Origin: Cyanophora paradoxa CCMP329
Lineage: Eukaryota > Plantae > Glaucophyta
NCBI GenBank assembly: GCA_004431415.1
Contig: QPMI01000395.1
Location: 62,001 to 126,000 of the forward strand
Reading direction: 5' to 3'
DNA length: 64,000 nt
Shown one piece after another: positions 26,543 through 64,000 of this stretch (its first letter is position 1; the number at the start of each line of letters is the position of its first letter). A model generated the notes under the pieces. That model had not been told where the DNA came from, did not search any database, and saw nothing but the letters and a program-made list of their open reading frames with translations. A program made the translations under genes and the position numbers.

Positions 26543-26574
<32 letters not shown>

Positions 26575-30061: not shown

Positions 30062-31828
30062 ATGAAAGTCAACACATGTACAGGCGCACGCAACATGCAT
30101 ACGTTTCCAGCCAGCACATGTACAGCGCCGGTCGACAGCACCATAGCGCCGAAAGTCGGCCGCAGCATTTCAAGGCAGAATTCCCGCCCCCGGATCATCT
30201 CTGCAAATCCATCGGAGTCATCCCGTACGCATGCCAGAGCGTGCGGGGCCGCGTCGGCGCAAAAGTCGTCCAAGGATAGCGTTTCACAGCCTGCGTCAGC
30301 GAAGGGAAATGCGCTGGCGCTGCAGCCGCCTCGGTGTGCCTGTCCAGCCACGTACAATGAGGAGAGGAATAACGACCGGCTGGATAATATTAATCTGCTT
30401 ATGCGCGTTTCGCAGTCTGGCATAATCGACCAGGTTCGGGCATCTTTCCCTTTCGAATTCGCGCCTCTCAATAAAATCCGGTGTCGAATTCAATGACGTT
30501 GACGCCGCCGAAATTGACCATCGGACGTCAGTTGTGGGGAGCCGTGGTCGCCGTGGACGCAGTGGTTGGAGTGGAAGCTGTACACGCCATCGATATCTCT
30601 AGATCTGCCCCGCGATCTCTGTCGCAGCCGTCCCGGCCCGCCGTGGAAATACCTGCTGCCGAAGGCGCCTCGCGATCGAGCTCGAGCCCATCGATATCGC
30701 GATCCTCCGTCTCGTTCCCGGCGTACGAGGCCTTCCACTTGGTTCGCGCTCTCGCTTTTAGCATAAGATTGCATGCGCGCGAGTTCTTCATGATCAATGA
30801 CCCGAAACTTCACCAGGCCCTGCACCGCGCGATTTCGTCGCCAAAAGTGCCATGGGACCTCGCCGACGGCAAGCAACTCGCACAGGTGCGAGTTTCTGAG
30901 CCCGTTCCTCTGAGCGATAAAAGTCTCGATCTCGATTAGTACCAAATGAGATGCGAAGCTGACTTGCACACGTGCGCGCGCGCAGGCAAACTGGGCCGTC
31001 GACACAGACGCGTGTGGGGGCACGCAAATGTCGCGGGAAGTTTTCGACAGGGCGGTGATCAGCGTGTCTAAGTTCTGGGCCGCGAAGCTCGAGAGCAGCG
31101 GATTCTTTACCGGCATACGCCTCCTGGCGCTGGACGCCGGCCTGGAAGGCGATGTCGACCTAGATCACCTCTTCCTCGCTTGCTTTCTCGTGGTGCGAAA
31201 TCATCGCCTCTTGCTCCTGCGCATGCGCATGCATCCTGAATATCGCATGTTCCGGAGCCGTTAAAAAAAACGTTAACCCTGAATACGCAGGCTGTGACGA
31301 AGCCTGTTTCTCCCGATTGCGATATCGATGGCGCGACGGCAAGCTTAAGTTCGAGGAACCGCTGCAACTCCGTCATTCGGTCTTGGATGGGTGCGCGACG
31401 CGTACGGCCGCTACTTGTTCGCCGAGTTGAATTCACAGTTTCCTAATACACGCGTGCGCTGATCGTGACTCACTCACGTCATGTCAGAGGTGGAGCTTGG
31501 CGTTTGCCATCCGAAAGGAGTCATGTCCGCGCTCCAGAAGCTGGTCGAGGCGTCGACCCGCCGCGCCCGCTGCTACAGCTCCGCGGCCGTGGACGGCGAC
31601 GCCGTTGTCGATTTCTCTAGATCTGCTCTTCCGCCTCCCGTTGCGGCTGTCGAGACGCGCCCGGCGACGCCGGAACCGTGCCTGGAACGCGACCGGCCTG
31701 CGTCCGCCCCGGGGGCCACGTCGGCCGGCTCCCGTTTGCCCCCCGAGGGGCTCCTTCGCTTTGCGCTGCACAACCGCATGGAGAAGCTACTCGCACAGCG
31801 CTGTAGAGCTCGACTTCGATCTTCGTAG
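30062..31828 (+). CDS. Hypothetical gene X, copy 2
   Basis: Near-identical to 19229-20989. Confidence 0.6.
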
Positions 31829-32135
31829 CTGCGGCTGCAGTGCAAACGTTTCCAGTACAGCTACAGATCTCGAGCTTGAGGTAGCTATATAGGCGCGGCC
31901 CCAGTCTGTAGCTGCCAAACCATTTTCATATTACCGCGGCCGAGGTTTACGTAACAAATACTGATATACTTAGTGGCAATACCTTCGCATGCAGAGAATT
32001 CGAAGCTTTATGTATATTTTACCCTTCGGAGAGACAAGACCCAATTGCAAATGCACATAGGTATACTATAGCTAGTACTGTACCTGTAGCAACTGCAGTA
32101 CACAAGATGGGAATTTCATGGTGTAGTATTAAATA

Positions 32136-34060: not shown

Positions 34061-37000
34061 ATGGCGGCCTTTCTCCCGGCGCCGCTCCCTCCCGCGCGCG
34101 CCTCAGCACCGACCGCGCCCTCGTCGTCTTTGCGCCGCTCGCGATCGGCCGCCCCGCCGGCGCTGATCGCGCCGGCTCTCGTTCCGCTTGCAATTGGTCC
34201 GGCAGCACACTCGGTGCCGGGCGGAGGCGACCGGCCGCAGCGGGGCGATCGGCCGGAGCTTTTTCGCGGGCGTGGGATCCCCGCGCGCCTCCTGAGCCGC
34301 GGCCGGCCAGCAGCGGCAGGACAAGGTGCGCTCGGGAGAGTGCGCGAAAACGTGCCGGTTCAGCTTAAATAAGCATACTTACATGCGGAATCGCTTTTAT
34401 TTGGGTTGCTCACGCGCGCGCAGGAGCCCGCTTTGAGTTCGCGGTCCGGGCGGAGCTCGGCGGCCCGGACGTCGACAGCCCCCTCCCGCCGGCACCCACC
34501 GGCTCCGACGCGCCCGTCAGCGGCGGCAGCAACGGCGCGGGCGCGGCATCGCCGGCCCGCAAGCCAGACGCGCCGGGCGGCCAAGCTGCTGGCCTCGCGT
34601 GCCCGCTCCCTTCGCCGTCGGCCGAGGCCGGCGCGGCAAAGCAGACGGAGCCGACGGCCGATCGCGAGCAGCAGCCCTTCGAGTGGCGCAAAAACTGGTG
34701 CCGCAAATTCGAAGCCGAAGCTCCGGCGCGCGGGCCATCGGACCGGCTGCGGGCTCACGCGCGCCCGGCGGCGGGGGCGCGCGCAGGTACCCGGTGGCCT
34801 TCGTGGAGGACTTCCCGCGGGGCCGCCCGTACCCTTCTCCCTCTTCGACGAGCCCCTCGTCCTCTGGGCCGTGCGCCCCGCCCGCCCCGCGCCCCGCGCC
34901 GCGCCTCGCGTCCCGAGCTCTCGAGCTGCCGGCCGGCGCGCGCGGGGGGCGCAGGGGAGGGCGGGGCGGTGCGCTGCGTGCTGGACCGGTGCCCGCACCG
35001 CGCGGTGCCGCTCTCGGACGGGCGCCTCGAGGGGCCCTGCTCGAGTGCGGCTACCACGGGTGGCAGTTCGACGGATCCGGCCGCTGCGCGCGCATCCCGC
35101 AGCTCGAGGCCGGCGCCGCCATCAACCAGCGCCGCGCCTGCGTCGCCGCCTACCCCGTCGCCCTCGCCCAGGGCATCATCTTCGTGCCCGCCCCGCCCCG
35201 CTCCCGAGCCCCGAGTCCCTTAATTTCTCCCGAAAACGCCTCTCCAACCGTCTTGCACTGAGCGCGGGGCCGGCCGCGGGGCAGGTGTGGGCGGACCCGA
35301 AGTCGCCCCCGACGAGTCCCTCATCCCCCGCATCGGTCCGCCCCGAGCTCTAACTCTGCTATTAATATCCCTTACTGCCTCACTATCCACTCATCGGAGA
35401 ACGTAGCACGTTTAATTTTAAATTTAATTTTCGCATGCGCGTCTTTTGGATACGCGTCCTTTCTTAGTTTTCGCGCGGCCCGCGAAATCGGGCTTGCGTT
35501 CAATCATAAATTTCGCAGGACTAAAGTTCGCGTTTAATTTCGCAGGGCTGCTGGAGCACCCGGGCCTCTCGCCGGCCGTCTTCGACATGTCCCGCGACGT
35601 CCCCGTCGACCACACGATCACCCTCGAGAACCTCATGGGCGCGCCTCCTTTCTATGCACATATGCTAAGATTTTTAGAGTTGCAAATGTTTTTGGTTTCA
35701 TCAGTTCTTTTGCATGCGCAGATCCCTCCCACGTACCCTTCGCGCACCATGTCCGCCTACATTTCGCGCCCTAGCCCACAAAGCCGACCTCGAATTGACT
35801 AGATTTCGGTGGTTTCGCAGGGGCGCAGGGACGCGGGAGTTCGCGGGCCCCATCGAGACGCGCGTCGCCGGCCGCTCGCCCGACGGCTTCCGAGGGACCT
35901 TCCGCATCTTAAGGCGGGCATTAAAATTATTGGCGTTGAGAAATTAAAGATAGAGCGCGTCGCCTTGCTAATTCTCCACTTTTCTCTTATCGTTTTGTCG
36001 CCGAAGCCCGGGGACACCCGCCGCACTCGGCCACCGCACAATTGAGTTTCGGGTGCGGATGCGCCTCCAGGATGCGCTGCAGATATATATGCCGATATCT
36101 TTGCCTCCGGATAAATTGCTTCGCGATCGTGCGCGCAGGCGCCGTGCATGGTCGACATCACGATCGAGCAGGACAACGGAGCGTCTCCAAACAGGCGAGT
36201 CGACGTCTTCTCATTCATCGACCGATCGAAGAGTCTCTTCAGCTATTATCGTTTTCTCTCGGCTTCGAACTCAAAAACCTTAGACACAAGAAATATGAAT
36301 CTGAAGCTTTCTCAGATTTTCTGCGGACCCAAAGGGCCCTGATGCATCTCTTCGCAGGTCTTTTACGTGGTGCCGCTGGGCCCGGGCGCGCCCGCGTCCA
36401 CACCCGCTTCGTCAACATCGTCCCGAAGCCCGTCCTCGTGCGCTGCCGCCATCCCCGCCCTACAGGCGCGTCTCAGGCGCATCTCGCTCCCTGACTCAGC
36501 GGCACGCGCTCTCCGCCGCGCAGGCGGTGGCGCCGCGCTGGGCCCTCCACGCCTTCGCGAACCTGCCCCTCGACCAGGACATGATATTCCAGTGCGACCA
36601 TCGGATTAAATTTTAAATGTGCTACGTTGTTATAAAGAGGACCAGGATTAAAATGCGCTGCGTTGTTACAAAAAGTTTTCGTTTTTGCTGTATAGGACAT
36701 GATCTTCCAGTGCGCTCGATTCTCAGCGTTGTTCTGAAGAGCTTGAATTGCTTTAATTTCTCTGCGGCTTGAGCTTAAGCTTTAATTTACACTTTGCTTT
36801 GCTGCAGGTGCTACCAGCAGCGGCACCTGCGGCGGCGGGCGGGGACTGGGCCGCCGCCTACTCCATTCTCGCCCCCTGCGACCGGTGCACCCCTCTAGAT
36901 TTAAAGCAGCAGCTTTTCTTCTTCTTGTTTTCGCGCGCCTGGTATGGATGGCTTAAGCTTTAGGCAGGTTCGTGGTGGAGTTCCGGCGCTGGCTGGACGG

Positions 37001-37363
37001 GGCGCAGGCGAGCCTCCCCGTCCGATACACCGACGCCGCGCTCCCCGACGCCCCGCTGTGCGCTGCTCGGCGTTCGCGTTCAAATTAAATTGGATTACTG
37101 ATTCTAAATTCGAACTAAATGGAGCTCCAGCGAACTAAATTCGATGCATATCTATGATTGGAGCGCACGTGATTTGCAACTGATTTAAGCGACGCGTAGA
37201 AAGAAGCTTCGATCTGAATATTTAATTCTAAATCAAAGAAGCTGCCCCCGTCAACTTACTCTTGACGCTTTTCGCGCATGCGCAGGCCGCCGCCTTCGGT
37301 GCTGCTGGACCGCTACGAGCAGCACACGCGGCGCTGCCCCGCGTGCTCCTCCGCCCTCCGCCG

Positions 37364-37395
<32 letters not shown>

Positions 37396-37563
37396 CCGCC
37401 GTCGCCGGCGCGCTCCTCGCGCCGCGGCGCTGCCCGCGGGGGCGTGGGCGCTGGCGGGCGCGGGCCTCGGAGTCGCGGCGGCGGGGGCCGTCGCGGGGCT
37501 GCCCTGCGGCAGGTGGAGCGGCAACTCACGTACTTCCCCAACGATCTCAATAAGCGGCCGTGA
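34061..37563 (+). CDS. Rieske oxygenase gene A, copy 3
   Basis: Near-identical to copy 1; more single-base losses in G/C runs, probably sequencing error. Confidence 0.85.
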
Positions 37564-42056: not shown

Positions 42057-43820
42057 ATGAAAGTCAACACATGTACAGGCGCACGCAACATGCATACGTT
42101 TCCAGCCAGCACATGTACAGCGCCGGTCGACAGCACCATAGCGCCGAAAGTCGGCCGCAGCATTTCAAGGCAGAATTCCCGCCCCCGGATCATCTCTGCA
42201 AATCCATCGGAGTCATCCCGTACGCATGCCAGAGCGTGCGGGGCCGCGTCGGCGCAAAAGTCGTCCAAGGATAGCGTTTCACAGCCTGCGTCAGCGAAGG
42301 GAAATGCGCTGGCGCTGCAGCCGCCTCGGTGTGCCTGTCCAGCCACGTACAATGAGGAGAGGAATAACGACCGGCTGGATAATATTAATCTGCTTATGCG
42401 CGTTTCGCAGTCTGGCATAATCGACCAGGTTCGGGCATCTTTCCCTTTCGAATTCGCGCCTCTCAATAAAATCCGGTGTCGAATTCAATGACGTTGACGC
42501 CGCCGAAATTGACCATCGGACGTCAGTTGTGGGAGCCGTGGTCGCCGTGGACGCAGTGGTTGGAGTGGAAGCTGTACACGCCATCGATATCTCTAGATCT
42601 GCCCCGCGATCTCTGTCGCAGCCGTCCCGGCCCGCCGTGGAAATACCTGCTGCCGAAGGCGCCTCGCGATCGAGCTCGAGCCCATCGATATCGCGATCCT
42701 CCGTCTCGTTCCCGGCGTACGAGGCCTTCCACTTGGTTCGCGCTCTCGCTTTTAGCATAAGATTGCATGCGCGCGAGTTCTTCATGATCAATGACCCGAA
42801 ACTTCACCAGGCCCTGCACCGCGCGATTTCGTCGCCAAAAGTGCCATGGGACCTCGCCGACGGCAAGCAACTCGCACAGGTGCGAGTTTCTGAGCCCGTT
42901 CCTCTGAGCGATAAAAGTCTCGATCTCGATTAGTACCAAATGAGATGCGAAGCTGACTTGCACACGTGCGCGCGCGCAGGCAAACTGGGCCGTCGACACA
43001 GACGCGTGTGGGGGCACGCAAATGTCGCGGGAAGTTTTCGACAGGCGGTGATCAGCGTGTCTAAGTTCTGGGCCGCGAAGCTCGAGAGCAGCGGATTCTT
43101 TACCGGCATACGCCTCCTGGCGCTGGACGCCGGCCTGGAAGGCGATGTCGACCTAGATCACCTCTTCCTCGCTTGCTTTCTCGTGGTGCGAAATCATCGC
43201 CTCTTGCTCCTGCGCATGCGCATGCATCCTGAATATCGCATGTTCCGGAGCCGTTAAAAAAAACGTTAACCCTGAATACGCAGGCTGTGACGAAGCCTGT
43301 TTCTCCGATTGCGATATCGATGGCGCGACGGCAAGCTTAAGTTCGAGGAACCGCTGCAACTCCGTCATTCGGTCTTGGATGGGTGCGCGACGCGTACGGC
43401 CGCTACTTGTTCGCCGAGTTGAATTCACAGTTTCCTAATACACGCGTGCGCTGATCGTGACTCACTCACGTCATGTCAGAGGTGGAGCTTGGCGTTTGCC
43501 ATCCGAAAGGAGTCATGTCCGCGCTCCAGAAGCTGGTCGAGGCGTCGACCCGCCGCGCCCGCTGCTACAGCTCCGCGGCCGTGGACGGCGACGCCGTTGT
43601 CGATTTCTCTAGATCTGCTCTTCCGCCTCCCGTTGCGGCTGTCGAGACGCGCCCGGCGACGCCGGAACCGTGCCTGGAACGCGACCGGCCTGCGTCCGCC
43701 CCGGGGGCCACGTCGGCCGGCTCCCGTTTGCCCCCCGAGGGGCTCCTTCGCTTTGCGCTGCACAACCGCATGGAGAAGCTACTCGCACAGCGCTGTAGAG
43801 CTCGACTTCGATCTTCGTAG
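42057..43820 (+). CDS. Hypothetical gene X, copy 3
   Basis: Near-identical to 19229-20989. Confidence 0.6.
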
Positions 43821-44127
43821 CTGCGGCTGCAGTGCAAACGTTTCCAGTACAGCTACAGATCTCGAGCTTGAGGTAGCTATATAGGCGCGGCCCCAGTCTG
43901 TAGCTGCCAAACCATTTTCATATTACCGCGGCCGAGGTTTACGTAACAAATACTGATATACTTAGTGGCAATACCTTCGCATGCAGAGAATTCGAAGCTT
44001 TATGTATATTTTACCCTTCGGAGAGACAAGACCCAATTGCAAATGCACATAGGTATACTATAGCTAGTACTGTACCTGTAGCAACTGCAGTACACAAGAT
44101 GGGAATTTCATGGTGTAGTATTAAATA

Positions 44128-45315: not shown

Positions 45316-46486
45316 CTCCCTCCCGCGCGCGCCTCATCACCGATCGCGACAGCGTCCTTTGCGCCGGCTCTCGTTCCGTTGAGTCCAGCTTCGCATGCGG
45401 CACCGAGCGGAGCCGTCCGGCTGCAGCGGAAGCGATCGGCGGGAGCTTTTTCGCGGGCTCGAGAGCCCCCGCACGCCTCCTGAGCCGCGGCCGGCCGGCA
45501 GCGGCAGGGCAAGGTGCGCTGGGGAGACTGCGCGAAAACACGCCGGTTCGAAATTCAGCTCAAATAAGCATATATACTTGCATGCGAAATCACTGTTACT
45601 TGGGTTGCTTACGCCGTACGCGCACGCATGCGCATGCGCGGGAGCCCGCTTTGAATTTGCGGTCCGGGCGGAGCTCGGCGGCCCCGACGTCGGCAGCCCC
45701 CTCCCGCCGGCGGCCGCCGGCTCCGACGCGCCCGTCAGCAGCGGCAGCAACGGCGCGCGCGGGCGCGGATTCGCCGGCTCGCAAGCCAGACGCGCCGGGC
45801 GGCCAAGCTGCTGGCCTCGCGTGCCCGCTCCCTTCGAATTCGCCGTCGGCCAAGGCCGGCGCGGCAAATCAGGCGGAGCCGGCGGCCGATCGCGAACAGC
45901 AGCCCTTCGAGTGGCGCAAGAACTGGTGCCGCGAAGTCGAAGTCGAAGCCCCGGCCGTTCGCACAATTGCAATTGAGTTTCGGGTGCGCATACTTAGACG
46001 CCTCTACGATTCGCCTTGGTCTTGAATTTGTCGCTGCAGCTATGCCAATCTCGAGCTCTTCAATTTGACCCCCGATTAATTGTTTCGCGATCTTTCGCTG
46101 CGGCGGTGCCCGGAGCCGCGCCTTAGCAGCCGCGGTGGCTGCGGTTCTTTTGATGAAGTCCGCCTCCGCCTTAGGGCACATGCAATTCTACTCGTTCGCC
46201 CAGGGGTGCCTGTACGGATCGTCCATGATGCAGCACGCCTGCCGAGCTTGCAGTGAGTGCGCGCTTGGTGGGGTGAGCGCGGCGCCGGCGCCGCGGCGCA
46301 CGCACCGCGAAAGAGACATTGCCGAGCGGTTTGCCGGCTGGCGCCGGGATGAGGCAGGAGCGCAGGTAGTCCGCTCTCGCAAATTCGCTCCGGTCCGCGT
46401 TGCTTTTTGGGCCCCGCGGCCGCGCGCGCGCGCGCCCGCCTGCACGCCCGCTTCGTCAACATCGATATCGTCCCAAAGCCCATGCC
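45316..46486 (+). pseudogene. Internally deleted Rieske oxygenase pseudogene (gene A-like)
   Basis: Homologous to gene A exon 1 (no ATG), intron 1 and exon 2 up to FEWRKNW. It then jumps to sequence like 13350-13450 and 13695-13755. Rieske and Fe-binding exons are absent. Confidence 0.8.
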
Positions 46487-46945
46487 ACCCTCGTCACGGC
46501 GTACGTCCCGAACGCACTAATTCTCATAATTTTATAATCATTACACGAATTTGCATCAATTTGCAATTGCTTTAAACAGTCTGCGAAACATTGTATTTGC
46601 ATTGATCATAATATTCAATACTGTAGCATGAAGTAGCTATCTACTGTACATGTACTGCGGTAGCTACAATATTAATACTTAGCTAGGATTTGCATTTACG
46701 ACTTGCCTCTCCGAAGGGTAAAATATACATAAAGCTTCTTTGCATGCGAACTTAATTTTATATTAAATATATCAGTATTTGCAACGTAAACCTCGGTAAT
46801 ATGAAAATGGTTTGGCAGCTACTAGGCTACGCAGTGACAGACTGGGTCACTGGGGCCGCGCCTATATATAGCTACGTATACCTCGAGAACGAGATCTGCA
46901 GTTGTACTGCAGCTGGAAACGTTTGCACTGCATGCGCAGCCGTAG

Positions 46946-48877
46946 CTACGAAGATCGAAGTCGGGCTCTACAGCGCTGCGCGAGCAGCTTCTCCATGCGG
47001 TTGTGCAGCGCAAAGCGAAGGAGCCCCTCGGGGGGCAAACGGGAGCCGGCCGACGTGGCCCCCGGGGCGGACGCAGGCCGGTCGCGTTCCAGGCACGGTT
47101 CCGGCGTCGCCGGGCGCGTCTCGACAGCCGCAACGGGAGGCGGAAGAGCAGATCTAGAGAAATCGACAACGGCGTCGCCGTCCACGGCCGCGGAGCTGTA
47201 GCAGCGGGCGCGGCGGGTCGACGCCTCGACCAGCTTCTGGAGCGCGGACATGACTCCTTTCGGATGGCAAACGCCAAGCTCCACCTCTGACATGACGTGA
47301 GTGAGTCACGATCAGCGCACGCGTGTATTAGGAAACTGTGAATTCAACTCGGCGAACAAGTAGCGGCCGCACGCGTCGCGCACCCATCCAAGACCGAATG
47401 ACGGAGTTGCAGCGGTTCCTCGAACTTGCCGTCGCGCTATCGCGATCGCAATCGGGAGAAACAGGCTTCGTCACAGCCTGCGTATTCAGGGTTGACGTTT
47501 GTTTTTACGGCTCCGGAACATGCGATATTCAGGATGCATGCGCATGCGCAGGAGTAAGAGGCGATGATTTCGCACCACGAGAAAGCAAGCGAGGAAGAGG
47601 TGATCTAGGTCGACATCGCCTTCCAGGCCGGCGTCCAGCGCCAGGAGGCGTATGCCGGTAAAGAACCCGCTGCTCTCGAGCTTCGCGGCCCAGAACTTGG
47701 ACACGCTGATCACCGCCCTGTCGAAGGCTTCCCGCGACATTTGCGTGCCCCCACACGCGTCTGTGTCGACGGCCCAGTTTGCCTGCGCGCGCGCACGTGT
47801 GCAAGTCGGCTTCGCATCTCATTTGGTACTAATCGAGATCGAGACTTTTATCGCTCAAAGGAACATGTACAGGCTCAAAAACTCGCACCTGCGCGAGTTG
47901 CTTGCCGTCGGCGAGGTCCCATGGCACTTTCGGCGACGAAATAGCGCGGTGCAGGGCCTGGTGAAGTTTCGGGTCATTGGTCATGAAGAACTCGCGCGCA
48001 TGCAATCTTATGCTAAAAGCGAGAGCGCGAACCAAGTGGAAGGCCTCGTACGCCGGGAACGAGACGGAGAATCGCGATATCGATGGGCTCGAGCTCGATC
48101 GCGAGGCGCCTTCGGCAGCAGGTATTTCCACGGCGGGCCGGGACGGCTGCGACAGAGATCGCGGGGCAGAGATGGCGTGTACAGCTTCCACTCCAACCAC
48201 TGCGTCCACGGCGACCACGGCTCCCCACAACTGACGTCCGATGGTCAATTTCGGCGGCGTCAACGTCATTGAATTCGACACCGGATTTTATTGAGAGGCG
48301 CGAATTCGAAAGGGAAAGATGCCCGAACCTGATCGATTATGCCAGACTGCGAAACACGCAAAAGCAGATATTCCAGCCGGTCGTTATTCCTCTCCTCATT
48401 GTACGTGGCTGGACAGGCACACGGAGGCGGCTGCTGCGTCAGCGCATTTCCCTTCGCTGACGCAGGCTGCGAAACGCTAGCGCTATCCTTGGACGACTTT
48501 TGCGGCGACGCGGCCCCGCTTGCGCTGGATATCGATCTAGATCTGGGCGACTTCGAGGGATTCGCGGCCGCAGAGGAGATCTGGGGTCGCGAATTCGGCC
48601 CTGAGATGCCGCGGCCTGAAATGTGCATGTCGACGGGCGCTGTATTAGCTGCAAACGTTTGCATGTTCCGCGTGCCTGTGTAGCTATAGATTTGCCTGAG
48701 CGTCCGCTTCTTGTTAACGTCGCTGCCAGCTTCGATGCAAGATTTGCGCGTACGGGGAGAGCTGATGCTATGGCCCGCAGCCGGCATATGCGCATGCACG
48801 GGACCCCCTATCGTCAACGTCCGCGCGAGCTCGCGGGTCGCTTCTCCACGCTGCTGCTGACGCATACGAATGCTCAT
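46946..48877 (-). CDS. Diverged inverted paralog of gene X
   Basis: Same exons with substitutions (MSREAFDRAVISV, FFMTNDPK); identical last-exon peptide; different 5' end. Confidence 0.6.
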
Positions 48878-51963: not shown

Positions 51964-54947
51964 TCAGAGCGATCGCGAGCGCCGGAGGAGCACGGAGGCG
52001 TTGCGGAGGGGCGTCGGGCCGCCGGGCTCCAGCGCAGCGAAGTTCGGCAGCGCCTCCCGCGCCCGCCCCTCTGCACGCGCCTGTGTGCCGGCGCCGGCGC
52101 CGGCACCCCCAAGTCAAGACGAGGTTAGTTAGACGTCGACCCGGCCCCAGAGCGCTGAATCGTAGCGGCGGCGCCGGTCGCGGGCAGGCTCAGGGCGAGT
52201 TGTATCAAGAGATCTAGATTTTATATAGTTTACTTTTAATGCTTACGAATGCTAACGACCAGCATCGCTACCGTAGTACTCGGCTAGTGAGCCGTTGAGG
52301 CCTAGTTGTAGCCTTGTTATAGTTGCGGTACCGGTGATTAATTCGCGAATTTCAGCGCCAGGGCGGGAACCCTAGCGCTAGCGCCAGCTGCAGCATGCGC
52401 ACCCGGACGGCTGCGAGGGCGGCCGCCCTGCCCTCGGGCCCCCGCCCCTCGTCCAGCGCCGCCTGCGCTCGCGATCGAAGCGATCGCGACGATCGCGGCG
52501 ATCGCGAATTTCGCGTGCAGATTCGAGGGCGGACCTCGAGGTAGGCTCCGAGGTGCGCGAACTGCATGGCGACGATCCGCGCCGCGGCCGCCGCGAGGTC
52601 GCTCGGGCTCGGGCCGGGGCCGGTCACCCCCAGCAGAGCCTGTGCATGCGGGACCGTTTGCAATCACGATGACGGGATCAGATCTTTCTTCGGATCCAGA
52701 TGCACGTTAGTTTTCAGGGGTACATGTGCACCTGGAAGGAGCCGATGTTGTTCGTCTGCCGGGTCTCGACGCGCTCCAACGCGAGCCCCGCGGGCGCCGT
52801 CCCGTCCTGCTCGTCCGCGCGCGGCACAAATATTAATTACAACTAATAAACTGGAGGAGGCACAAATTACAACTAAATACAACTAAATAAACTGAGTTTC
52901 GCGGAGGAGGCGCAGAGGGAAAAGGGAAAGGCTCACCTCGAAGGGGCCGGTGAAGTCCTCCAGGGTCCGGTAGTGAAAGAGGGGGACGACCCGCGCCGCC
53001 TCCCCCGGCGCCCACTCTGCCGGGTTCGAATTGAATCCGTTCGGGGGAGCTCGAGGTGGGCGCCAACAACGATCGAACAGCAGATCTAAAGAGGGGGTCA
53101 CGCACCCCCCGCGGCGACGGCGTCGCGGATCCCGCGTGCAAGGCAGCCCTGCAAAAGTAGCAAAAGTAGAGGCGCGGGTTCTTCAGAGCCGGCGCCGGCG
53201 CGCTTGAGTCTGCGCAGAGCACCGGATGTATGGAATTGAAGATGCGCCACGCGTCGCGCTGCGCCTCGTCGCTGCGCGCGCGTGCCCCGGCGCCCGTCGC
53301 GAAAAACCAAGCGCGAAAAAACGAAAATGCGCGAAACCGAAAGCGGAGCGCCAAAATGCGCAAATCCGAAATACGCGAAGGGCGCACGCGGGGCGGGGGC
53401 GGACGCCAGCCACGAGAAGGAGGGCGCCGCCCGGGCGCAGCTCCTCGGCCCGGCGGGCAAGGAACGCGCGCCAGTCCTCCGCCGCCTGCGGCAGGGCGTC
53501 CCTCCACGCGTACGGTGATCCGATGCAGAGCTCCAATGTATAAATATAATTGCAATATAATTACGCCTGCGCGCCCTGACTCGACGGGATCGAACCTGAG
53601 CCTCGACGGCTGCCCGCTCGCTAGGGCTCAGCTCTTCAAAAACGAACGAGGAAGCCGACTGGTCCGACGGTCGGGATCGTGAGCATACTCGAATAATGTG
53701 CGGGCCGGGCGTAAACGCACAGAGAGAGGCGCCCGGGAGAGCCAGTGGATGGAGGTCGAGCAGAGGGCGAGGTCGACGGTCCCGGGGGGCGCGCAGGCCC
53801 CGTGAAGGGAGCGGGGTACGACGGCGGCGTGGACGCCGGGCAGCCGCTGGGGGTACGCGCCCGGAGCGCCCAGGCCGGCGAGGAGGGTGCCGAAGTCGTG
53901 TTCGGGGCTGTCCGCGTGCACTGCGGAGCGCGATAATATTTAGTACGCAGGTTTCGCGGCTCTGCGGGACTTTAATTAGTCTGCAATCTCAATTTGCAAC
54001 GCGGACGGCAGAGGATGTTGTTGGAGCAGCGCGAGCGCAGGATCTCGGCGACGGTGCCGATAGCCTCGAGCGAGTTGAGTCCCTGCCGGCCCCGGGGCGC
54101 CGGGCAGCGCAGTCGGCAGCGTTCGAGTATTCAGCGCGCGCCCACGACTATTTCTCCAGCGACGCAACGGACCGTTATCCGGGCGTAGTCCACGACCGTC
54201 AAGAGGGCGCCGGGGTCGGCGGGCAACGCCATCGCCCGCGCCGCCTCCAGCAGCGGCCCCAGGCCCTAATTTTATTTTAAGAGGCCATGAGAGAGAGGCA
54301 GCGCTCGCGTATTATATATATTAAGGAAAAGGAGCGCTGCAGGTACCTGATCCACGAAGGCGCGCTCGAGGGCGCGCTCGCGCTCGCGATCGCCATCGGA
54401 GTCCGCCCGCGGCGCAGCCTGCAGCTCTGTTACGCCTGCAGCGCAGAATTTAAAAAGCAGTTACGATGTCGGATCCGGAGCCGCTGACGGGCGCGCTGGC
54501 GGGGCTGTCGGTCGCGACGTCGGGACCGTCGAGCTCCGCCCGCACCACAAAGCGGGTTCCTGCGCAAGCGCACGTGCGTCAACAAATATTCGCGCGATAG
54601 AATGTTTCGCGCTTGTACTGCGTGTAGTTGTGCGGGAATTTGCGGCCGGGATCACCTTCGCCAGCCACTGCCGGCCGGCCGCGGTTTAGAAGGCGCGCGG
54701 GCGCTTCCGAGCCCGCGAAAAAGCTCCGGCCGATCGCCCCCGATTCAGCCAGAAGCTTAATGCTCCGCCCGGCGCCGCGCGCGCCGCCGGAACGACCGGA
54801 TCCGGATCCAGAACGAGAGCCAGCGCGGTCGCGATGGGCGCCGGCGCCGGCGGGGCGGCCGAGCGGCCCGATCGCGAGAACGTGAACAGGGAGGGCTGCG
54901 CATGCAACGCGCGCGGGAGGGAGCGCAGCCGCAACGAAGGCCGACAT
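51964..54947 (-). CDS. SABATH-family (Methyltransf_7) SAM-dependent methyltransferase-like protein with plastid transit peptide, ~12 exons
   Basis: MSAFV transit peptide ending TRFVVRAE, then family motifs in order: VVDYARIT/GLNSL, HADSPEHDFGTLL, VPRSLHG...CSTSIHWLS, QAAEDWRAFLARRAEELRPGG, PLFHYRTLEDF. Probable end NASVLLRRSRSL*; 3' exons less certain. Confidence 0.85.
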
Positions 54948-55500
54948 CGCGATCGGATCACCCGGAACAGAACTCTTCAAAGTTTGCGGGCGCGAGGGGA
55001 AACAGAACAAGGATCGGAGCAAGCTTAAGGGGGAACAGAACAGGGGGACAGAACAGGGAGCAAGGGGGAAGGGGGGAACTTTGCGAGTGACTCTAAGCCT
55101 AGGAGTGTCGCCGTCTTGCCCGCTTCTCCCTAGCTTCCGAAGTTCCAACCGGCGGCACCGCTCTTGCGCCTTAAGCTTGCGCTCCGCATGCGCATGCGCA
55201 GTCCTCCCGTCGACCCCTTCGTCTTTTGGCCCTTGGCAAGTTGCGCCTCCAGCCCTAGCCCCCTCGACCCTCTCACCCCCCGGGCCCAGCCACGGAGATA
55301 TCGATAGCATTTCCGAAAAGACTCTGACATACGACACGAGAATGAACTTTATCCAGCGATTGCAAGTTCTCGTGATCATGATCAATGTTTATCTAGATCT
55401 AATCCTTCTTAGCAGCAGCCATGGAGGCGAAGCGGGCGCGGATCATATTGAGCTCCTTGCGCGTGGCCGGCGCGCTGCGGGCGGGCATTAATGTTAGCAC

Positions 55501-58500
55501 TCATCGCCTCTCTGGATTAAATTGTGTTATTATATAATTATAAATTCGAAGAGAGCGCGTGGACCGGTTCTTGTCGAGCCCCTCGGGGAAGTAGAAGAAG
55601 CGCTTCTCGAGGGCGCGGAGGGGCGGCAGCGCCGCGGCGCACGCGAGCGCGAGGAGGACCGCGCCCGCGGCGAAGGCCGGGGCGGCGGCGGCGGCGGCGG
55701 CGGCCTCGGGGACGGGCCCGACGCGGCCGTAGAGGGCGGGGGAGGCGAGGAGGGCGGGCGAGCAGCTGCTGCAGAGCCGCACGTGCTGCTCGTACCGGTC
55801 CAGCAACTCCCGCCTGGGCCCCGGGGCCGCGGGGCCCCGGGCCCCGCCTCGGCGCCCGCGCCGCCGGCCGGCCCGCGCCGCTGGTTCGGCATTGTCGCCC
55901 ACGCCTGCCCACCGCGTCAGCCGCGGCTCGCTGAGGCGGAGCCCGCGGCGCGGCGCATGCGCGTGCCGACTCCATCCAGAGGCGGAAGGCGGCGACGAAG
56001 GCGTCGCAGCCGGCCGGCACGTACCACTCGCGGCGCCAGTCGTACCCCCCGGGGCGTAGCCGCGCCTCCTGCTCCATCAGGAGCACGAGGTCCTGATCCA
56101 GCACCAGGTTCCTACCCGCCGCTATTATAATTAACGCCACAGCTTCCAATGAATTTATAAGGCGCAGGCGCGCGGAGGGGCAGAGTCGCTATAGACGCGC
56201 CAGCGCCTTGCGCGCTTCAAGCAAATTAACGCCGCGGGGTCCTGGTCCTGGTCCAGAACCAGGTTCCTATCCGCCGCTATTAATTATAACGCCGCAGCTT
56301 CGAATTCGAATAAATTTCTTTTTATAAGGCGCAGGAGCGCGGAGGGGCAGAGTATTTATAAGCTCGCAGTTACTGTCGATGTTAGGCGCCCGTCATGAAC
56401 ATGAAAGCTTAAAACAACGTGAAGATAAATTCTGGAGGCGGGTAGGCGCGCCTCTCCATGTGGTCGATGAAGCGGGGCGCCCGCAGCAGCTCCTTTGCGC
56501 TGCGCGTGAAGCTGCCCGCGGCGCAGAAGTCGCTCATGATCAGGGGTAGCCCGTCAAGTCATAAAATTCGCTCGGGGGGAAAGGGGGGGGGGGAGGCGGG
56601 GAAGGGGGGACCGGAGGGGTCCTGGCGTACCGGGCAAAGATGCGGGAGCGCCCGTGGCCGAGGGGTACAGTGTAGAACACCACACCGCTCTCTCCGATCG
56701 CGAAGGGGAGCCTGCCGATGGGTCTGTATAAATGGAGGGGCCGCTCTTGGCGGGCCGGGGCGGGGCGGGGCGGGGCGGGGCGGAGACGGGTCGGGGTACC
56801 TGAAGATGTAGCCACTCGTCACGGGAGGCCGGAAGAACAGGAAGGTTCCCGCGTCGGTCCTGGGGCGGGACGCTGATTAATTAAAGGTTGACGTCAAGCA
56901 CGTGAAAAGAAGGCTTAGATCGGCACCCATCGGGAAGCTGCAGCTGGGGGCCGAGTTCGAAGGCGGCCATGAAGAGGCCCGCGCGGCCGGGCTCTGGGCG
57001 CTCAAGGAAGCGCAGGGGAAGGGGCCCCGAGGCGTAGCGGTTCCCCTGGGCGGGCCGTGGTGCGCGAAGGGGACGTGCGTCGGGTCCAGGAAATTCTCCA
57101 CCAGCACGTTGTAGTCGTACGGCCTGAGATCGCGATCATTAGCTCCGAATTCCAGGATCTCTAAGAAATGATATTTTAAAAAGCTCCAGGAAGCTTCGAG
57201 AGGGTACGGAGCCTGAAGCAATCGTGAGGATCGGGCTTACAATTAGCTTCGCATTCAAGAAAGCCCTAGGAGATATAAGAAAGCCCTAGGTTATCAAAGA
57301 AATCTTTGGGATGTATAAGAAAGCTCTAGGATATGTAAGAATTCGAAAGCTCTCGGATATTTAAGAAAGCTCTGGGATACAAAAGAAAGCCCTAGGATAT
57401 ATATGCAAGAGACGGACAGGTCGCGGACGAAGTCAACGCTGGTGACGCCGGGCCGCTCGAGCAGCTCCGACGTCGGGATCGAAGACTCGTCCCCCGCCGC
57501 GCCCGCCTCGCCCCACACGAAGACGACCCCCTGCCGCACCACCACCGCGTGCGCCGCCGCGCACGTTCGCTGCCCGTTCACGGCCACGCCGGCCGGCAGC
57601 TGCGGGACCCGCGTGCACTCGCCGGCGCCTGCGCCCCGGCCCCGCCGCCCCATCAGCGCTCAAGAAAGGGCCTGGACTGGACCGATGAGCCTTGATAAAC
57701 ATACATACCATTGAACTGCCAGCCCTGCGCAGCAAGGCGGCCCGAGGGTGAGGGCGGGGACGGGAAAGCTCCAGGGGGGTTCACGTGGCGAGGGGCGGGG
57801 CCGCACGTGGTAGCCGCACTCGAGGGCGCCGGCGCCGGGCTCGTCCTCGGGGACGACGCGGCCCTCGGAGAGGGGCACGGCGCGGTGCGGGCAGCGGTCC
57901 GCCACGCAGCGGACCGCCCCGTCCGCCGCCGACCAGAGGACGAGGGGCTCGTCGAAGAGCGAGAAGCGCACGGGCACGCCCGCCGGAAAGTCCTCCACGA
58001 AGGCCACCGGGTACCTGCGAGCTCGCAATCGATATCGACTCGAGATCTAGATCTAGAGTCGAGGCGCGGCTCGCAAGCAATCGACGGGCGGAGCCTATAT
58101 TCAATTTGGCATAAGTACGCAAACTTATTTAGATGTAATTAATTAGTTGAGTTGATTGGCGAGTTGATTGGTCCTGATCAGTGGGGCTTTAAGGTTTGCA
58201 ACTGCGGCACCAGTTCTTGTGCCAGTCGTAGGACGGGGTCGGCGCCGTGGCGGCATCATCTTGCAGATGAACGTCGCTCTTGGGGGACTCGGCCGCGGCT
58301 GGCGCCGGAGGCGCTTCTCCGCCGGACTCCGCCCGCAAGACTACCGCTCCCGGAGCTGCCGCTCCGCGCGCACAGCGCAGTTTTATTCAGTGTTATCTCA
58401 TATGTTCTGCAGGTTGTACTGCAACTGCGCGCATGGGTGCGCACCGGATTCCGCGAAGCTGCGGCCGGTCGATCGCGACCGGATTGCGACCCCCGCGAAA

Positions 58501-58686
58501 AACGCGCGGCTCGCACGGCTCGCAGGCGATGTTGACGCCGGCCGGAGAGGCGGCCGAGCGGCGACGCCAACGGCCGTGGCATGGCAGAGAGCACCGGCGC
58601 CGGCGCTGAATGCCGACCGCGAGCCGGATCCGGAGAGCGGCGCGTGCACGGGGGTGCAGAACAGGGTCAGCTGCGAATTCGAACAT
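55501..58686 (-). CDS. Plastid-targeted PaO/Tic55-family Rieske oxygenase (gene B)
   Basis: YDWHKNWYPVAFVEDF; CPHR...CGYH/GWQFNG; ENFLDPTHVPFAHH; NLVLDQD; HVRLCSSC; hydrophobic tail. Start codon uncertain (~58650-58840). Confidence 0.9.
57259..57400. repeat. Intronic ~20-bp degenerate minisatellite in gene B
   Basis: About 7 copies of GAAAGCYCTAGGATATNTAA. Confidence 0.75.
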
Positions 58687-59170
58687 TAAATGCTGCGGTT
58701 AGCCGCTGCGGTTCGGGCCCGCTCGAGCTCTCGCGATCGAACGTTAGCATACACAGCGCGAAATTATATATTATGGATGGTCGCCGCGCGCCGCGCGCGC
58801 GCGGCTCAGCGGCTCGAATTTGTTAAAGGCTTGCGCATTCTCCGCGCACCGCGCTCGGCCGGATCCGGGGGCGAGCAGCTGTTCCGAAGTTCTCCTGCGA
58901 AGAGTGCGAGCTTCAGCTCCCCTATATCTCCCTCTCTCGCTCTCCCCCGCCCCCTCCCCTGGGGACCCCTTGTTCGAGCTCGCCCACTCCCCCCCTCCCT
59001 GCCCCTTCCCCTCTCCCCCAGCTCCATCCTCCCCCTTATCTCCCCTGCCCAGTAGCAGGGGGATCCAGCCCCGGCGATCCGAGCTTCGGCGGTCCCAAAC
59101 CCCCGGCCCGCGCCCCCTTCGCGCATGCGCAGATTAGCCACTGCGCCAGGGTGACCCTTACCTTATAAAT

Positions 59171-59258
59171 TCCCTCCCTCCCTCCCTCCCCCTCCCTCCC
59201 TCCCCTCCCCCCCCCGCCCTCCCCGCCCCCCCCCCCCCCCCCCCCCAACTCCCCCCAC
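59171..59258. repeat. C-rich polypyrimidine tract (G-rich on minus strand) upstream of gene B
   Basis: Long C runs next to a TATA-like ATTTATAAGG on the minus strand at 59161-59170; second tract at 58920-59050. Confidence 0.7.
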
Positions 59259-59463
59259 GACCCTCGACCCCGGCCCGCGCCCCCAGCCCCAGCTCATTTA
59301 TACCAGCCAGGGCGACCTCACCTTGCAAGCCATGGCCATATCATTCAAGTTTTGAGTAAACGTCAACAGGCGATCGCGAGCAGGCCTAGACTCGTGCGCT
59401 CGCTCATGATCATGATCAGGCGAGAGCGTTCAATTATGCGCTCGCTCATGATCATGATCATGA

Positions 59464-62400
59464 TCAGGGCATCTTGTTGAGGCGGGCCGCGAAGGGGAAG
59501 TACCCGAACCACGACTCGGCGGCGCGCGCCGCCGCCGCGCCGCCGGCCGCGGCGGCCGCCCCCGCGGCGAGGCCGGCCGCCGCCGGCTGGGCCGCCGCAA
59601 GGGAGCCGGCGGCGAGGGCGGCGAGGACGAGGGCGGCGGCGGCGAGGGCGCGGCCGGCGGCGCGGGTGCGGCGGAGGGCGGCGGAGCAGCTCGGGCAGCC
59701 GCGCACGTGCTGCTCGAAGTGGTCCGACAGCGCCGCCTCCGCCGGGGCCGGCGCCCTGCGGAGTCGAGAGGAGGTCGGCTGATTAGAAAGCGCAAGGATC
59801 GCGTTCGGCGGGGCCTTAGCTTAGCTCAGCTCAGAGCAGCGCGGGGGCTGGTCGTCGGCGATAAGGAACGCACTCAGCGGCGGCGTCGGCGGCGCCGGCG
59901 GCGGCGTTGGGAAGGGAGTCCGCGACGGAGTCGTACCAGCGGCGGAACTCCGCCACGAACCTGCGCGAAAACGCGTCGCGCTCAAATTTCGCAGATTTTC
60001 GCGGAAATGCCGGGCGGAGAGAGAGAGCGTGCGCGTGTACAAGCCTGGCAGGGCCGCACCGGTCGCTGCTGGTGGCGAGGTTGTACGAGCGGCGCCAGTC
60101 GCCGCCCTCGGCCCGCAGCCGCCTCTCCTGGGACGCCCTGCAGTTGCAAGGTCGAAATATTGATTTAAACCGATCGCAATTAATGAGTTGCGCGCGCGCA
60201 GATCCAGATCTATGTGATTAATATTATAGTTAGCTGAGCATGAACCTTTTATAGATCTCTTCAAGGCTTAATAAAACAAGAGATCCAGAGGGCGATTTCA
60301 CAAGATATCAAAGAATCGATATCGTTGCGCAATAATATAATATCTTATCAATGAAATATAAGATCTAGAGCTAGAGCGCGATTTTGCACAAAGGAGCGGA
60401 CAGGGTGCCTGTGTCCTGGTCGAGGATGACGTTAAGGAGGAAGTGGAGGAGCGGGGCAGGCAGCGCCCGCTCCGGCAGCGCCCTCGCCTCGTCCGCCACG
60501 AACCTGCGCGCGCTCTCAGCTTCGCTCTCGTCTGATTAGCTTCGCTTAATTGTTTTAGACCAACCGTACAGATCTAGACAAGCTCTTCTAGAAAATCTCT
60601 GGACGGCGCCGGCGGTGCGTCGATTTTATCATCGTAGGGCGTCGCGATATCGATCGGTTGATGGGCGCTTTACCGGGTGATGAGGCGGGAGCGGGAGGCG
60701 CCGAGGGGAACGACGTAGAACACCTCCGCGCAGCGCGCCCCCGCCTTCGGCCGCACCGCCTCCACCTGTCCCCCGGGGGCCGGGGTGAGAGAGGAATTGG
60801 TTGACGAGGGCGCTCGAAATGTAGGGAGAAGTGAAGGCTTTGGGCGGGGCCTCGCCTTGCAGGGCGCCTGCGTGCGAGAAACCAACGTCAGCGTTCGGAG
60901 AGAAATGGTTCAGTGCGGAGTCCATTTCAGATAGAAATATATACATATAATATAATAATAAGTCATTGCAGGGGCCGGGGACGCTCGCGATCGAATTGAA
61001 GTCGGAGGGCTCTAGCTCTACTAGGCTATAGCTAGCCCTCTAGATCTGGCCTCGAGAACCTTGAGAAGCCCTAGTAGGCGCGCGCCTCCAGGTTTATAAT
61101 TATAGTTATAAGTTTCGGAAGTCCGCGGTACAGCTCAGGCTTGAGCTCGCACCTGGAAGGTCACGAGCCGCCTCTCATGCGGGGGCTTGCCCGGCCTGCC
61201 ATCGCAAATTAAACTTGAAATCCGAAACTCAAACCGATTAATATTTAACATCGACATCGGCCGCGCGCGGGTCGGTAGACGCGGGCCCCGCCTGCGCCTG
61301 CGCCTGCGGCTATCGTTTCGGAGACAGGCGACGAGGCGAGGCTCACTTGAGGACGTTGAGGCGGTGGGTGCCTGTGAAGCCGCGCGGCCCCGAGCGCTCG
61401 ACGACCGTCTCGAAGGGCGCACCGTCCCCGCGCCGCCCGAACGTCCCTGCGCGTGTGCCCAGATCAATTTGTTCTTCTAGATCTGTGCATGCGCATGTCC
61501 GTGCATCGGAAGGTAGAAACGTATTGCGGCGCGACTTTTTCTTCTAAACACTCCAACCGACAATAATAACAGCCCTTCATAACAATTTTTGCAGCTTCGA
61601 GCTTCGAGGTGACAAGCTCGAATTCTTAAACTTAGGCGCGAAGAAAATTCGCGGCCAAAGTGGAAGACGACGCTACGAACCCGAGTGAGCGAAGGCGGCG
61701 TGGGCGGGATCTGATCACGAGGAGCAGCGCTCAATGCAAAGAAGCTGAGCCCGAGGGCTACTTATCTAGATATGGGGACAGACACCGCACCGAGGAGGTT
61801 CTCGAGGATGAAGGCGTGACTCACGGGGAGGTCCCGGACCATCCCGAAGGACTGCCCCGAATTAAACCCGATCATCGGCCGCGGGCGGGCCGCGGGCGGG
61901 CGCATGCGCGGCGCCAGAGCGCGCTTAGCTTAGGAAGCACGAGGTCGACTGTGCGTTCAAGAGCAAGCTCAAGCTTATAATTAAGCGGCTCAGGAGGGAG
62001 CTCGAGATTGCAATTAATATTCGGACGCAGAAATGAATATGGACGCAATTGAAGAATAATTTCTGCGAAGCGCGAGCGCGAGCGCAAGGGCGCGCGCACC
62101 ACCGCCCCGGGAGAGTCCAGCAGTTCTGCTCGAGGGCGCTGAGCGGTGAGCGAATGCACATCAAAGGCAGATCAAAGGAAGTCGAAATAAATCAAAGGCG
62201 ACTTCGAAATTAATCAATAAAAGTAGATTTGATCATGCGCGCTGAGCGAGGGGTTCTATTCTGGATACCCAAGGGATTGATATCGTGAGAGAAATCGTGC
62301 CCGGCGGCCAATTGCAGGGGCCAATTGCAAGCTGAAGGCGAAACTTGAAAGTGATTTTGTGCTTTGAAACTTAATCGTGACAAGCTAGCCTGTAGGTAGT

Positions 62401-63751
62401 GGCCAGAAAAGTAATTACGGAACTCGACTCAGAGCTCGGGGCGGACCGATGCGGGGAATGAGGGACTCGTCGGGGGGCGACTTCTGGTCCGCCCACACCT
62501 GCCCCCGGGCCCGGCCCCGCGCTCAGGGCAAGACGGTTGGAGAGGCGTTATCGGGAGAAATTAAAGGGACTCGGGGCTCGGGGGGCGGGGCGGGCACGAA
62601 GATGACGCCCTGGGCGAGGGCGATGGGGTAGGCGGCCACGCAGGCGCGGCGCTGGTTGATGGCGGCGCCGGCCTCGAGCTGCGGGATGCGCGCGCAGCGG
62701 CCGGATCCGTCGAACTGCCACCCGTGGTAGCCGCACTCGAGCAGGGGCCCCTCGAGGCGCCCGTCGGAGAGCGGCACCGCGCGGTGCGGGCACCGGTCCA
62801 GCACGCAGTGCACCGCCCCGCCCTCCCCCTGCGCCCCGGCCATGCCACCCGCGCGCGCCGGCGCCGGCGGCTCGGGACGAGAGGCGCGGCGCGGGGCGCG
62901 GGGCCGGGCGGGCGGGGCGCACGGCCCAGAGGACGAGGGGCTCGTCGAAGAGGGAGAAGGCGTACGGGCGGCCCCGCGGGAAGTCCTCCACGAAGGCCAC
63001 CGGGTACCTGCGCGCGCCCCCCGCCGCCCGGGCGCGCGTGAGCCCCGCAGCCGGTCCAATGGCCCGCGCGCCGGAGCTTCGACTTCGAATTCGCGGCACC
63101 AGTTCTTGCGCCACTCGAAGGGCTGCTGCTCGCGATCGGCCGCCGGCTCCGTCTGCTTTGCCGAGCCGGCCTCGGCCGACGACGACGGGAGCGGGCACGC
63201 GAGGCCAGCAGCTTGGCCGCCCCGCGCCTCGGGCTTGCGAGCCGGCGATGCCGCGCCCGCGCCGTTGCTGCCGCCGCTGACGGGCGCGTCGGAGCCGGTG
63301 GGTGCCGGCGGGAGGGGGCTGTCGACGTCTGGGCCGCCAAGCTCCGCCCGGACCGCGAATTCGAAGCGGGCTCCTGCGCGCGCGTAAGCAACCCAAATAA
63401 AAGCGATTCCGCATGTAAGTATGCTTTTTTAAGCTGAACCGGCACGTTTTCGCGCACTCTCCCGAGCGCACCTTGGCCTGCCGCGGCCGGCCAGCCGCCG
63501 CTCATGATCAGGAGGCGCGCGGGGGATCCCACGCCCGTGAAAAAGCTCCGGCTGCAGCTGATCGCCCCCGCTGCGGCCGGACGCCTCCGCCCGGCACCGC
63601 GTGAGCCGCCGGACCAAGCGGAACGAGAGCCGGCGCGATCAGCGCCGGCGGGGCGGCCGATCGCGAGCGGCGCAATTGCAAAGACGACGAGGGGCGCGGT
63701 CGGTGCTGAGGCGCGCGGGGGAGGGATCGGCGCCGCGAGAAAGGCCGCCAT
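59464..63751 (-). CDS. Plastid-targeted PaO/Tic55-family Rieske oxygenase (gene C)
   Basis: MAAFL transit peptide; CPHR...CGYHGWQF; ENLL/DPAHAAFAHS; VFYVVPLG; NVILDQD; FVAEFRRW; HVRGCPSC; ends YFPFAARLNKMP*. Confidence 0.9.
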
Positions 63752-64000
63752 CGCTGCGAGCGGAGAGCCTAAGCTTGAGGACTCGAGCTCGGGATCCGGA
63801 AGGGAGGAAACTCGCGGATAATCCTGGCCTCGACCTCGAGCTCGCCGCGGCGCCTCGAGCTCGATCGCGAGCTTCAGCTCGGGTGCACGAGATCTAGATG
63901 CACTAGATATCGATATCGCTGCGAGCGGATTTCAACGGTTAGAATTCGATCGCGGTGAGCCTTGGGGAAGAGGAAACTCGAGGCCAGGATATCATGAGCA

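Follow-up and report, generated by a model that had tools for sequence, protein, structure and literature searches.

A 64,000-nucleotide window from Cyanophora paradoxa CCMP329 (contig QPMI01000395.1, positions 62,001 to 126,000 of the forward strand, numbered here from its first nucleotide) carries genes for three types of Rieske oxygenase, designated A, B, and C, and a gene for a methyltransferase of the Methyltransf_7 family. The window is GC-rich (57 to 75%), intron-bearing nuclear DNA, and the EukProt C. paradoxa models tig00020510_g9801, g9805, g9806, g9807, and g9809 match it at 97 to 100%, which places it on their contig tig00020510. The minus strand between the ATG of gene C at 63751 and the end of the methyltransferase stop codon at 51964 holds oxygenase gene C, oxygenase gene B, and the methyltransferase gene, all of them intron-rich and in one orientation, and gene A is repeated in a tandem array elsewhere in the window. 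The genes and the array are laid out as follows.

59464-63751, minus strand: oxygenase gene C (ATG at 63751, stop codon at 59466-59464).
55399-58686, minus strand: oxygenase gene B (ATG at 58686, stop codon at 55401-55399; public model g9807, mis-spliced).
51964-54947, minus strand: Methyltransf_7 gene, SABATH-superfamily and FAMT-like (ATG at 54947, stop codon at 51966-51964; public model g9806, protein P0121).
11364-14881, plus strand: gene A, copy 1 (public model g9801 ends early, after the Rieske exon).
~23225-26744, plus strand: gene A, copy 2 (located by blastn and a family hidden Markov model [HMM]).
~34061-37563, plus strand: gene A, copy 3 (insertions and deletions [indels] in homopolymers distort its public model, g9805).
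45361-45955, plus strand: gene A fragment, part of exons 1 and 2 only, 83% identical (blastn).
10424-45117, strand not assigned: tandem array, with three complete units and a fourth that is partial (self-blastn).

The intergenic distances are 777 bp from C to B and 451 bp from B to the methyltransferase gene. The first-pass annotation of this DNA had described these three genes as co-oriented and closely spaced; the orientation and the adjacency hold, and the gaps are slightly shorter than the 0.55 to 0.8 kb given there. The three copies of gene A that it listed are also present, starting at 11364, ~23225, and ~34061, and a 5′ fragment of the gene lies at 45361-45955. Self-comparison of the window gave array periods of ~11.86 and ~10.83 kb at 99.5% identity, one unit consisting of gene A and a spacer of ~7 kb. 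The fragment occupies the expected gene site of the fourth unit, and no further matches to the family HMM were found downstream of it.

All four N termini (A, B, C, and the methyltransferase) have a phenylalanine at position 2 to 4, as expected from the earlier claim that all of these genes encode Phe-type transit peptides. An N-terminal phenylalanine is a hallmark of cyanelle transit peptides (PMC4510345), so that co-localization of the four proteins in the plastid is a sound inference from their N termini. The first two exons of the methyltransferase gene constitute a transit-peptide module with a traceable origin.

54947-54656 and 54559-54465, minus strand: exons 1 and 2 of the methyltransferase gene, transit-peptide module, homologous to exons 1 and 2 of genes A and C.

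The DNA alignment between the methyltransferase gene and genes A and C runs through exon 1 and the intron position, which is conserved, into the start of exon 2. At the protein level, residues 1 to 127 of the methyltransferase are identical to the gene A N terminus at 74 of 117 positions (63%; z score of 27), whereas they are unrelated to the N terminus of the methyltransferase's own paralogue, tig00000654_g2805 (z score of 0.2). Because the N terminus is this close to gene A, the intron position is kept, and the paralogue begins differently, the transit-peptide exons of the methyltransferase can be assigned as copies from the A/C genes.

Genes A and C are themselves joined by a shared 5′ module.

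62431-63826, minus strand: 5′ module of gene C, 1.4 kb, with 91% DNA identity to the 5′ end of gene A (blastn).

This match takes in both introns and ~100 bp upstream, with substitutions per site of 3 to 5% in the exons and 1.6 to 3% in the introns. Introns that are no more diverged than exons point to a gene conversion or a partial duplication in the recent past. Genes A and C are sisters that have a recently converted 5′ module in common, and the pairwise identities of the three oxygenases are distributed unevenly along the proteins.

A and C: 66% over HMM-aligned positions, 87% in the Rieske half, 50% in the rest.
A and B: 51% over HMM-aligned positions, 62% in the Rieske half, 44% in the rest.
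B and C: 47% over HMM-aligned positions, 57% in the Rieske half, 42% in the rest.

The description of A, B, and C as three distinct oxygenases is thus apt for their catalytic parts, which retain 42 to 50% identity between types versus 57 to 87% in the Rieske half, but it needs the qualification that A and C are sisters. In a maximum-likelihood tree of Cyanophora, cyanobacterial, and unnamed sequences, the Cyanophora oxygenases form two supported clades, (A,C) and (g3064,(g5288,B)), neither of which falls within the clade that the cyanobacterial and other bacterial sequences make up. Gene B belongs to the second Cyanophora clade, and its nearest relative, tig00000889_g5288 (P0193), lies on another contig and is 80% identical over 342 positions. 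Besides g5288, further PaO-type genes are tig00000681_g3064 (P0006) and g3067 (P0032). These last two overlap in sequence at 94% identity and may belong to another small array or be two parts of a gene whose model is split.

Database, family, and fold searches were carried out exon by exon or with the public-model proteins; joined spliced models were built from the window coordinates and compared only with the retrieved proteins. The family HMM, built from 31 full-length homologues and 454 positions long, gave ordered exon matches in A, B, and C that extend from positions 11 to 33 through positions 447 to 448. The Rieske domain (PF00355) was found on single exons, with 67.3 bits in A, 57.3 bits in C, and 53.4 bits in B. 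The PaO domain (PF08417) is split over exons, and its single-exon scores (A, 15.1 and 23.6 bits; B, 17.1 and 15.2 bits; C, 15.5 bits) each stay below the cutoff of 27, which the B-clade paralogues exceed (P0193, 53.1 bits; P0006, 77.7 bits). The range of 53 to 67 bits for PF00355 on single exons, together with a Methyltransf_7 (PF03492) score of 58.8 bits for the methyltransferase, bears out the Rieske and Methyltransf_7 assignments made at first pass.

The Rieske ligands CxH...CxxH and the LDQD motif were found in A, B, and C, each of which also has, in its last large exon, a CxxC motif before a hydrophobic tail. The iron site ENx2Dx2Hx4H is complete in all three when consensus splice junctions are used. 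The earlier statement that the three oxygenases keep the Rieske ligands, D-x2-H-x4-H, LDQD, and CxxC is therefore correct for every motif. The family-defining motifs are the Rieske CxH-x16-17-CxxH, E/D-N-x2-D-x2-H-x4-H, and the C-terminal CxxC, for which a function as a thioredoxin switch has been put forward (PMC6530659). In A and C, 16 residues separate the CxH and CxxH halves of the Rieske motif; in B and its paralogues P0193 and P0006, this spacer is 22 residues long, reflecting a six-residue insertion of the B-type clade in the loop that joins the Rieske halves (57807-57893 in gene B). An NCBIfam search of the oxygenases returned one match, far under the cutoff, and Atlas look-ups returned names at the family level only. 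The Cyanophora proteins resemble the PAO/TIC55/PTC52 (LLS1-like) enzymes in their Rieske center, iron site, CxxC motif with hydrophobic tail, and predicted plastid targeting, and they give exon-level matches to the PaO domain. They differ in grouping into two separate clades, apart from the cyanobacterial sequences compared, and in the B-type spacer of 22 residues versus 16 to 17.

The exons carrying these motifs in genes C and B are the following.

63007-62923 and 62828-62598, minus strand: Rieske exons of gene C, HMM-anchored.
61710-61681, minus strand: iron-site micro-exon of gene C.
~60472-60404, minus strand: LDQD exon of gene C, HMM-anchored.
59760-59506, minus strand: CxxC exon of gene C, HMM-anchored.
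58014-57807, minus strand: Rieske exon of gene B, HMM-anchored.
57123-57057, minus strand: iron-site exon of gene B.
56110, minus strand: start of the LDQD exon of gene B, located by HMM and by tblastn with P0006 and P0193.
55821-55594, minus strand: CxxC exon of gene B, located in the same way.

In gene B, the start of the LDQD exon and its acceptor region are duplicated in tandem (56271-56245 versus 56087-56113), the copy at 56271-56245 lying ~150 bp upstream of the exon that is used. A Pro/Arg/Ala-rich stretch with consensus GTGCGC...GCGCAG ends is present at 62829-62922 in gene C and at 12180-12266 in gene A. It is spliced out in the public model of gene C, whereas the public model of gene A shows it as an “insertion” of 29 residues within the Rieske domain, probably an intron retained by the annotation.

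The methyltransferase model comprises 15 exons, 14 GT-AG introns, and 505 amino acids, with no internal stop codon or frameshift. It was obtained by extending P0121 by coordinates, upstream to the ATG at 54947 and downstream to the last exon at 52080-51964. P0121 threads exactly onto 11 exons; the first three and a half exons are missing from it, as is the true last one, which matches the C terminus of the paralogue tig00000654_g2805. From its core to its C terminus, the protein aligns with bacterial homologues. Against the PF03492 cutoff of 29.8 bits, P0121 and the paralogue (52.6 bits) both score well above, and a single exon reaches 28.8 bits.

53721-53920, minus strand: core exon of the methyltransferase gene, with Asp-x-Pro-x2-Asp-Phe, Arg-Ser, and His-Trp-Leu-Ser motifs, the Pfam match of 28.8 bits, and the exon matches to the Protein Data Bank (PDB).

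An alignment with nine homologues and the structure 5f2k shows that the Asp of the S-adenosylmethionine (SAM) loop, the Asp of HxDxP, the Ser of Arg-Ser, and the Trp of WLS are conserved, and that the first Gly of the SAM loop is replaced by Ala in both Cyanophora paralogues. At the N-terminal lid, the bacterial Tyr...Ser..Gln aligns with Arg...Arg..Glu in both paralogues, with a Gln six residues past this position, although the alignment of this region (MAFFT) is uncertain. The best solved relative is the fatty acid O-methyltransferase of Mycobacterium marinum (PDB 5f2k; 72.8 bits, E value of 2.4e-19, P0121 residues 4 to 292), whereas plant SABATH structures match P0121 at no more than 38.9 bits (E value of 5e-9 or worse). 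The protein shares the DY-x4-G-x-NS, HxDxPxxDF, and WLS motifs with 5f2k and differs from it by its predicted plastid transit peptide, its 14 introns, the Ala at the first SAM-loop Gly, and an apparently nonconserved N-terminal lid. It has PF03492 in common with the plant SABATH enzymes (SAMT, JMT, and caffeine synthases), but these give much weaker matches. By these comparisons, the methyltransferase is a predicted bacterial-type Methyltransf_7 enzyme, nearer to the bacterial fatty acid O-methyltransferase than to plant SABATH. The SABATH label of the first-pass annotation is accordingly valid at the level of the Pfam family and misplaces the closer kinship, which is with the mycobacterial FAMT. 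SABATH proper has also been treated as a streptophyte family (bioRxiv 10.64898/2025.12.11.693594). A tree of library matches leaves the two Cyanophora methyltransferases alone on a long branch in an open comb, joined by no eukaryote clade.

The locus is read here as a locally duplicated and converted oxygenase array, next to which a bacterial-type carboxyl methyltransferase gene would have captured transit-peptide exons; the probability given to this reading is about 0.6. Local DNA duplication and the capture of exons between neighbors explain the linkage of the genes better than selection for a shared pathway does. An adjacency found after the fact is weak evidence, and the sharing of exons is itself accounted for by proximity.

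The genomic context was considered in the same light. Only two enzyme classes, Rieske oxygenase and Methyltransf_7, are present in the window, whose other long open reading frames (ORFs) contain no domain recognizable with Pfam and offer no further pathway candidate. Plant gene clusters are usually defined as adjacent genes of at least three different enzyme classes, compared with the two classes at the Cyanophora locus. The upstream region of the methyltransferase gene does not align with those of genes A and C, and no promoter common to them was found. Conserved synteny, to which the earlier annotation had looked for confirmation, was not found in the contexts compared: the neighborhoods of three bacterial methyltransferase homologues contain no Rieske gene, those of two cyanobacterial PaO-type genes contain no methyltransferase, and the Cyanophora paralogues lie on other contigs (the methyltransferase on tig00000654, the relative of gene B on tig00000889). 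In Nostoc sp. GCA_036919795.1 (L006:4973-7359), a PaO-type Rieske gene stands head to head with GUN4, which encodes a porphyrin-binding protein. This single case is a hint that the family's bacterial branch may have a connection to tetrapyrroles.

Three features of the locus weigh against duplication and capture as its explanation. Genes C, B, and the methyltransferase gene are co-oriented and 451 to 777 bp apart, which makes co-regulation possible; the methyltransferase has kept or gained the targeting module of the oxygenases; and B is not a duplicate of its neighbors A or C, so that members of two oxygenase clades meet at the locus with an enzyme of another class. The original proposal of a plastid metabolic cluster was right in that the genes form a tight, co-oriented physical cluster with Cyanophora-type transit peptides, but it is weakened by the presence of only two enzyme classes. 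In a truly co-functional plastid cluster, an oxygenase would oxidize a tetrapyrrole or other lipophilic substrate, the methyltransferase would then methylate the carboxyl of the product, and the shared transit peptide would ensure their co-localization. The adjacency, co-orientation, and short gaps, the transit-peptide module common to the methyltransferase and the oxygenases, and the assembly of two oxygenase clades at one locus are consistent with such a cluster, as are the Nostoc gene adjoining GUN4 and a plant precedent, the basil flavone 8-hydroxylase, a PTC52-type Rieske enzyme of specialized metabolism (Berim et al. 2014, as cited in PMC9306834). However, besides the two enzyme classes, the nonaligning promoters of the methyltransferase and A/C genes, and the lack of conserved adjacency in the three bacterial contexts or for the Cyanophora paralogues, the nearest solved relative of the methyltransferase acts on fatty acids and not on tetrapyrroles, and the motif of the N-terminal lid appears not to be conserved. 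A co-functional cluster is, on balance, unlikely. More doubtful still is its fullest form, a glaucophyte plastid pathway encoded as a nuclear cluster, in which an acid derived from chlorophyll or lipid would first be altered by diverged PaO-type oxygenases and then esterified by a bacterial-type carboxyl methyltransferase, itself recruited to the locus through the captured transit-peptide exons of its neighbors.

A different possibility is that the locus is partly decaying, with B, copies 2 and 3 of A, and perhaps C being pseudogenes, and hence with no working cluster. Frame breaks are seen in B at ~58650 and ~57050 and in copies 2 and 3 of A, and the gene A fragment at 45361-45955 and the tandem duplicate of the start of the gene B LDQD exon at 56271-56245 could also be taken as marks of decay. 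The nature of the breaks argues otherwise. The three gene A copies (within 11200-37640) show 28 differences over 3.7 kb, all of them one-base indels in G/C runs, with zero substitutions, which is the signature of uncorrected long-read assembly errors. Homopolymer errors in this GC-rich sequence occur roughly once per few hundred bases and mimic frameshifts. The breaks in gene B, apparent one-base shifts in exon 1 (~58650) and after the iron-site exon (~57050), likewise both fall in C runs, and the frame past the ~58650 shift resembles the transit peptide of a paralogue (z score of 3.9), whereas the frame of the public model does not. The conserved exons have no in-frame stops, the paralogue to which gene B is 80% identical over the 342 positions given above is apparently intact, and what was taken for a break in gene C is an intron bounded by consensus splice sites. 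Decay of the locus is quite improbable in view of these observations, and A, B, and C are probably intact as judged from their reading frames. A pseudogene reading of B, C, and copy 3 of A in particular was rejected on account of the homopolymer indels, the breaks in C runs, and the GTGCGC...GCGCAG intron in C. The public models g9801, g9805, g9806, g9807, and g9809 are all truncated or mis-spliced; those of the oxygenases go no further than the Rieske exon or leave out the iron-site exon, and g9809 covers only the 5′ part of gene C.

That the three gene A copies are an assembly artifact of a one- or two-copy locus, as the lack of substitutions between them over 3.7 kb might suggest, is highly improbable, because the units differ by kilobase insertions (~1 kb extra at 14951-15988 in unit 1 and further insertions in the partial fourth unit) and what closes the array is a gene fragment that has diverged (83% identical), both of which fit a real, young array.

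Several other repeats accompany the gene A array. The long spacer ORFs of the array units have no domain recognizable with Pfam. An element of 1.6 kb occurs once per array unit, and an inverted copy lies just beyond the array.

19410-21026, 30243-31865, and 42238-43857: 1.6-kb element within the array units.
46903-48519: inverted copy of the 1.6-kb element, 95% identical.
5831-6938 and 9717-10562: tandem repeats of ~130-bp units (88 to 95% identical), upstream of the gene A array.
3730-6666 and 7614-10562: segment of 2.9 kb duplicated at 98.5%, within which the ~130-bp repeats sit.

The long ORFs of the 1.6-kb element contain no Pfam domain, and the element may be a mobile element.

Under the preferred reading of a duplicated array with exon capture, the array would have been built by local duplication and gene conversion, and the neighboring methyltransferase gene would have been drawn in. 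The oxygenases would be imported through their Phe-type transit peptides and held at the plastid membrane by the hydrophobic C terminus. Electrons would pass from ferredoxin to the Rieske cluster and on to the His-His-carboxylate iron, where oxygen would be inserted into a hydrophobic substrate, perhaps a tetrapyrrole; a tetrapyrrole substrate is a guess at the level of the family. The two cysteines of CxxC would probably serve as a thioredoxin switch. The methyltransferase, acting in the same compartment, would use SAM to methylate the carboxyl of a lipophilic acid.

Two kinds of known systems can be set beside the locus. The basil flavone 8-hydroxylase resembles the Cyanophora oxygenases as a PAO-family oxygenase that serves specialized metabolism upstream of a methylation; the basil system differs in that its methyltransferase belongs to an unrelated O-methyltransferase class. 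According to what is reported of the work of Berim et al. 2014, the flavone 8-hydroxylase step is followed by O-methylation. We know of no clustering of the basil hydroxylase and methyltransferase genes. Among algae, biosynthetic clusters are exemplified by dab for domoic acid in diatoms and kab for kainic acid in red algae, for which pathway, product, and co-expression have been demonstrated. These clusters are similar to the Cyanophora locus in bringing together adjacent nuclear genes of different enzyme classes in an alga, but the Cyanophora locus is a putative cluster with two enzyme classes only.

In green plants, enzymes of the PAO/TIC55/PTC52 family have a central part in chlorophyll turnover; we know of no established role for the family outside the green lineage. 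Cyanophora has at least five distinct oxygenase types (A, B, C, g3064/g3067, and g5288), which belong to two clades and are in part organized in a young tandem array, and these enzymes are concrete candidates for addressing whether glaucophytes open the chlorophyll ring. To our knowledge, Methyltransf_7 is usually described as plant specific, and a predicted plastid-targeted, intron-rich, bacterial-type member in a glaucophyte broadens the picture of this family. The truncated and mis-spliced public models, together with homopolymer errors that mimic pseudogenes, matter for counts of plastid proteins in the Cyanophora genome. If the genes did act in one pathway, the locus would be the first glaucophyte metabolic gene cluster and would, for the first time, link a PAO-family enzyme functionally with one of the Methyltransf_7 family. 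As it stands, the methyltransferase gene provides a clean example of a gene that has acquired the transit-peptide exons of its neighbor.

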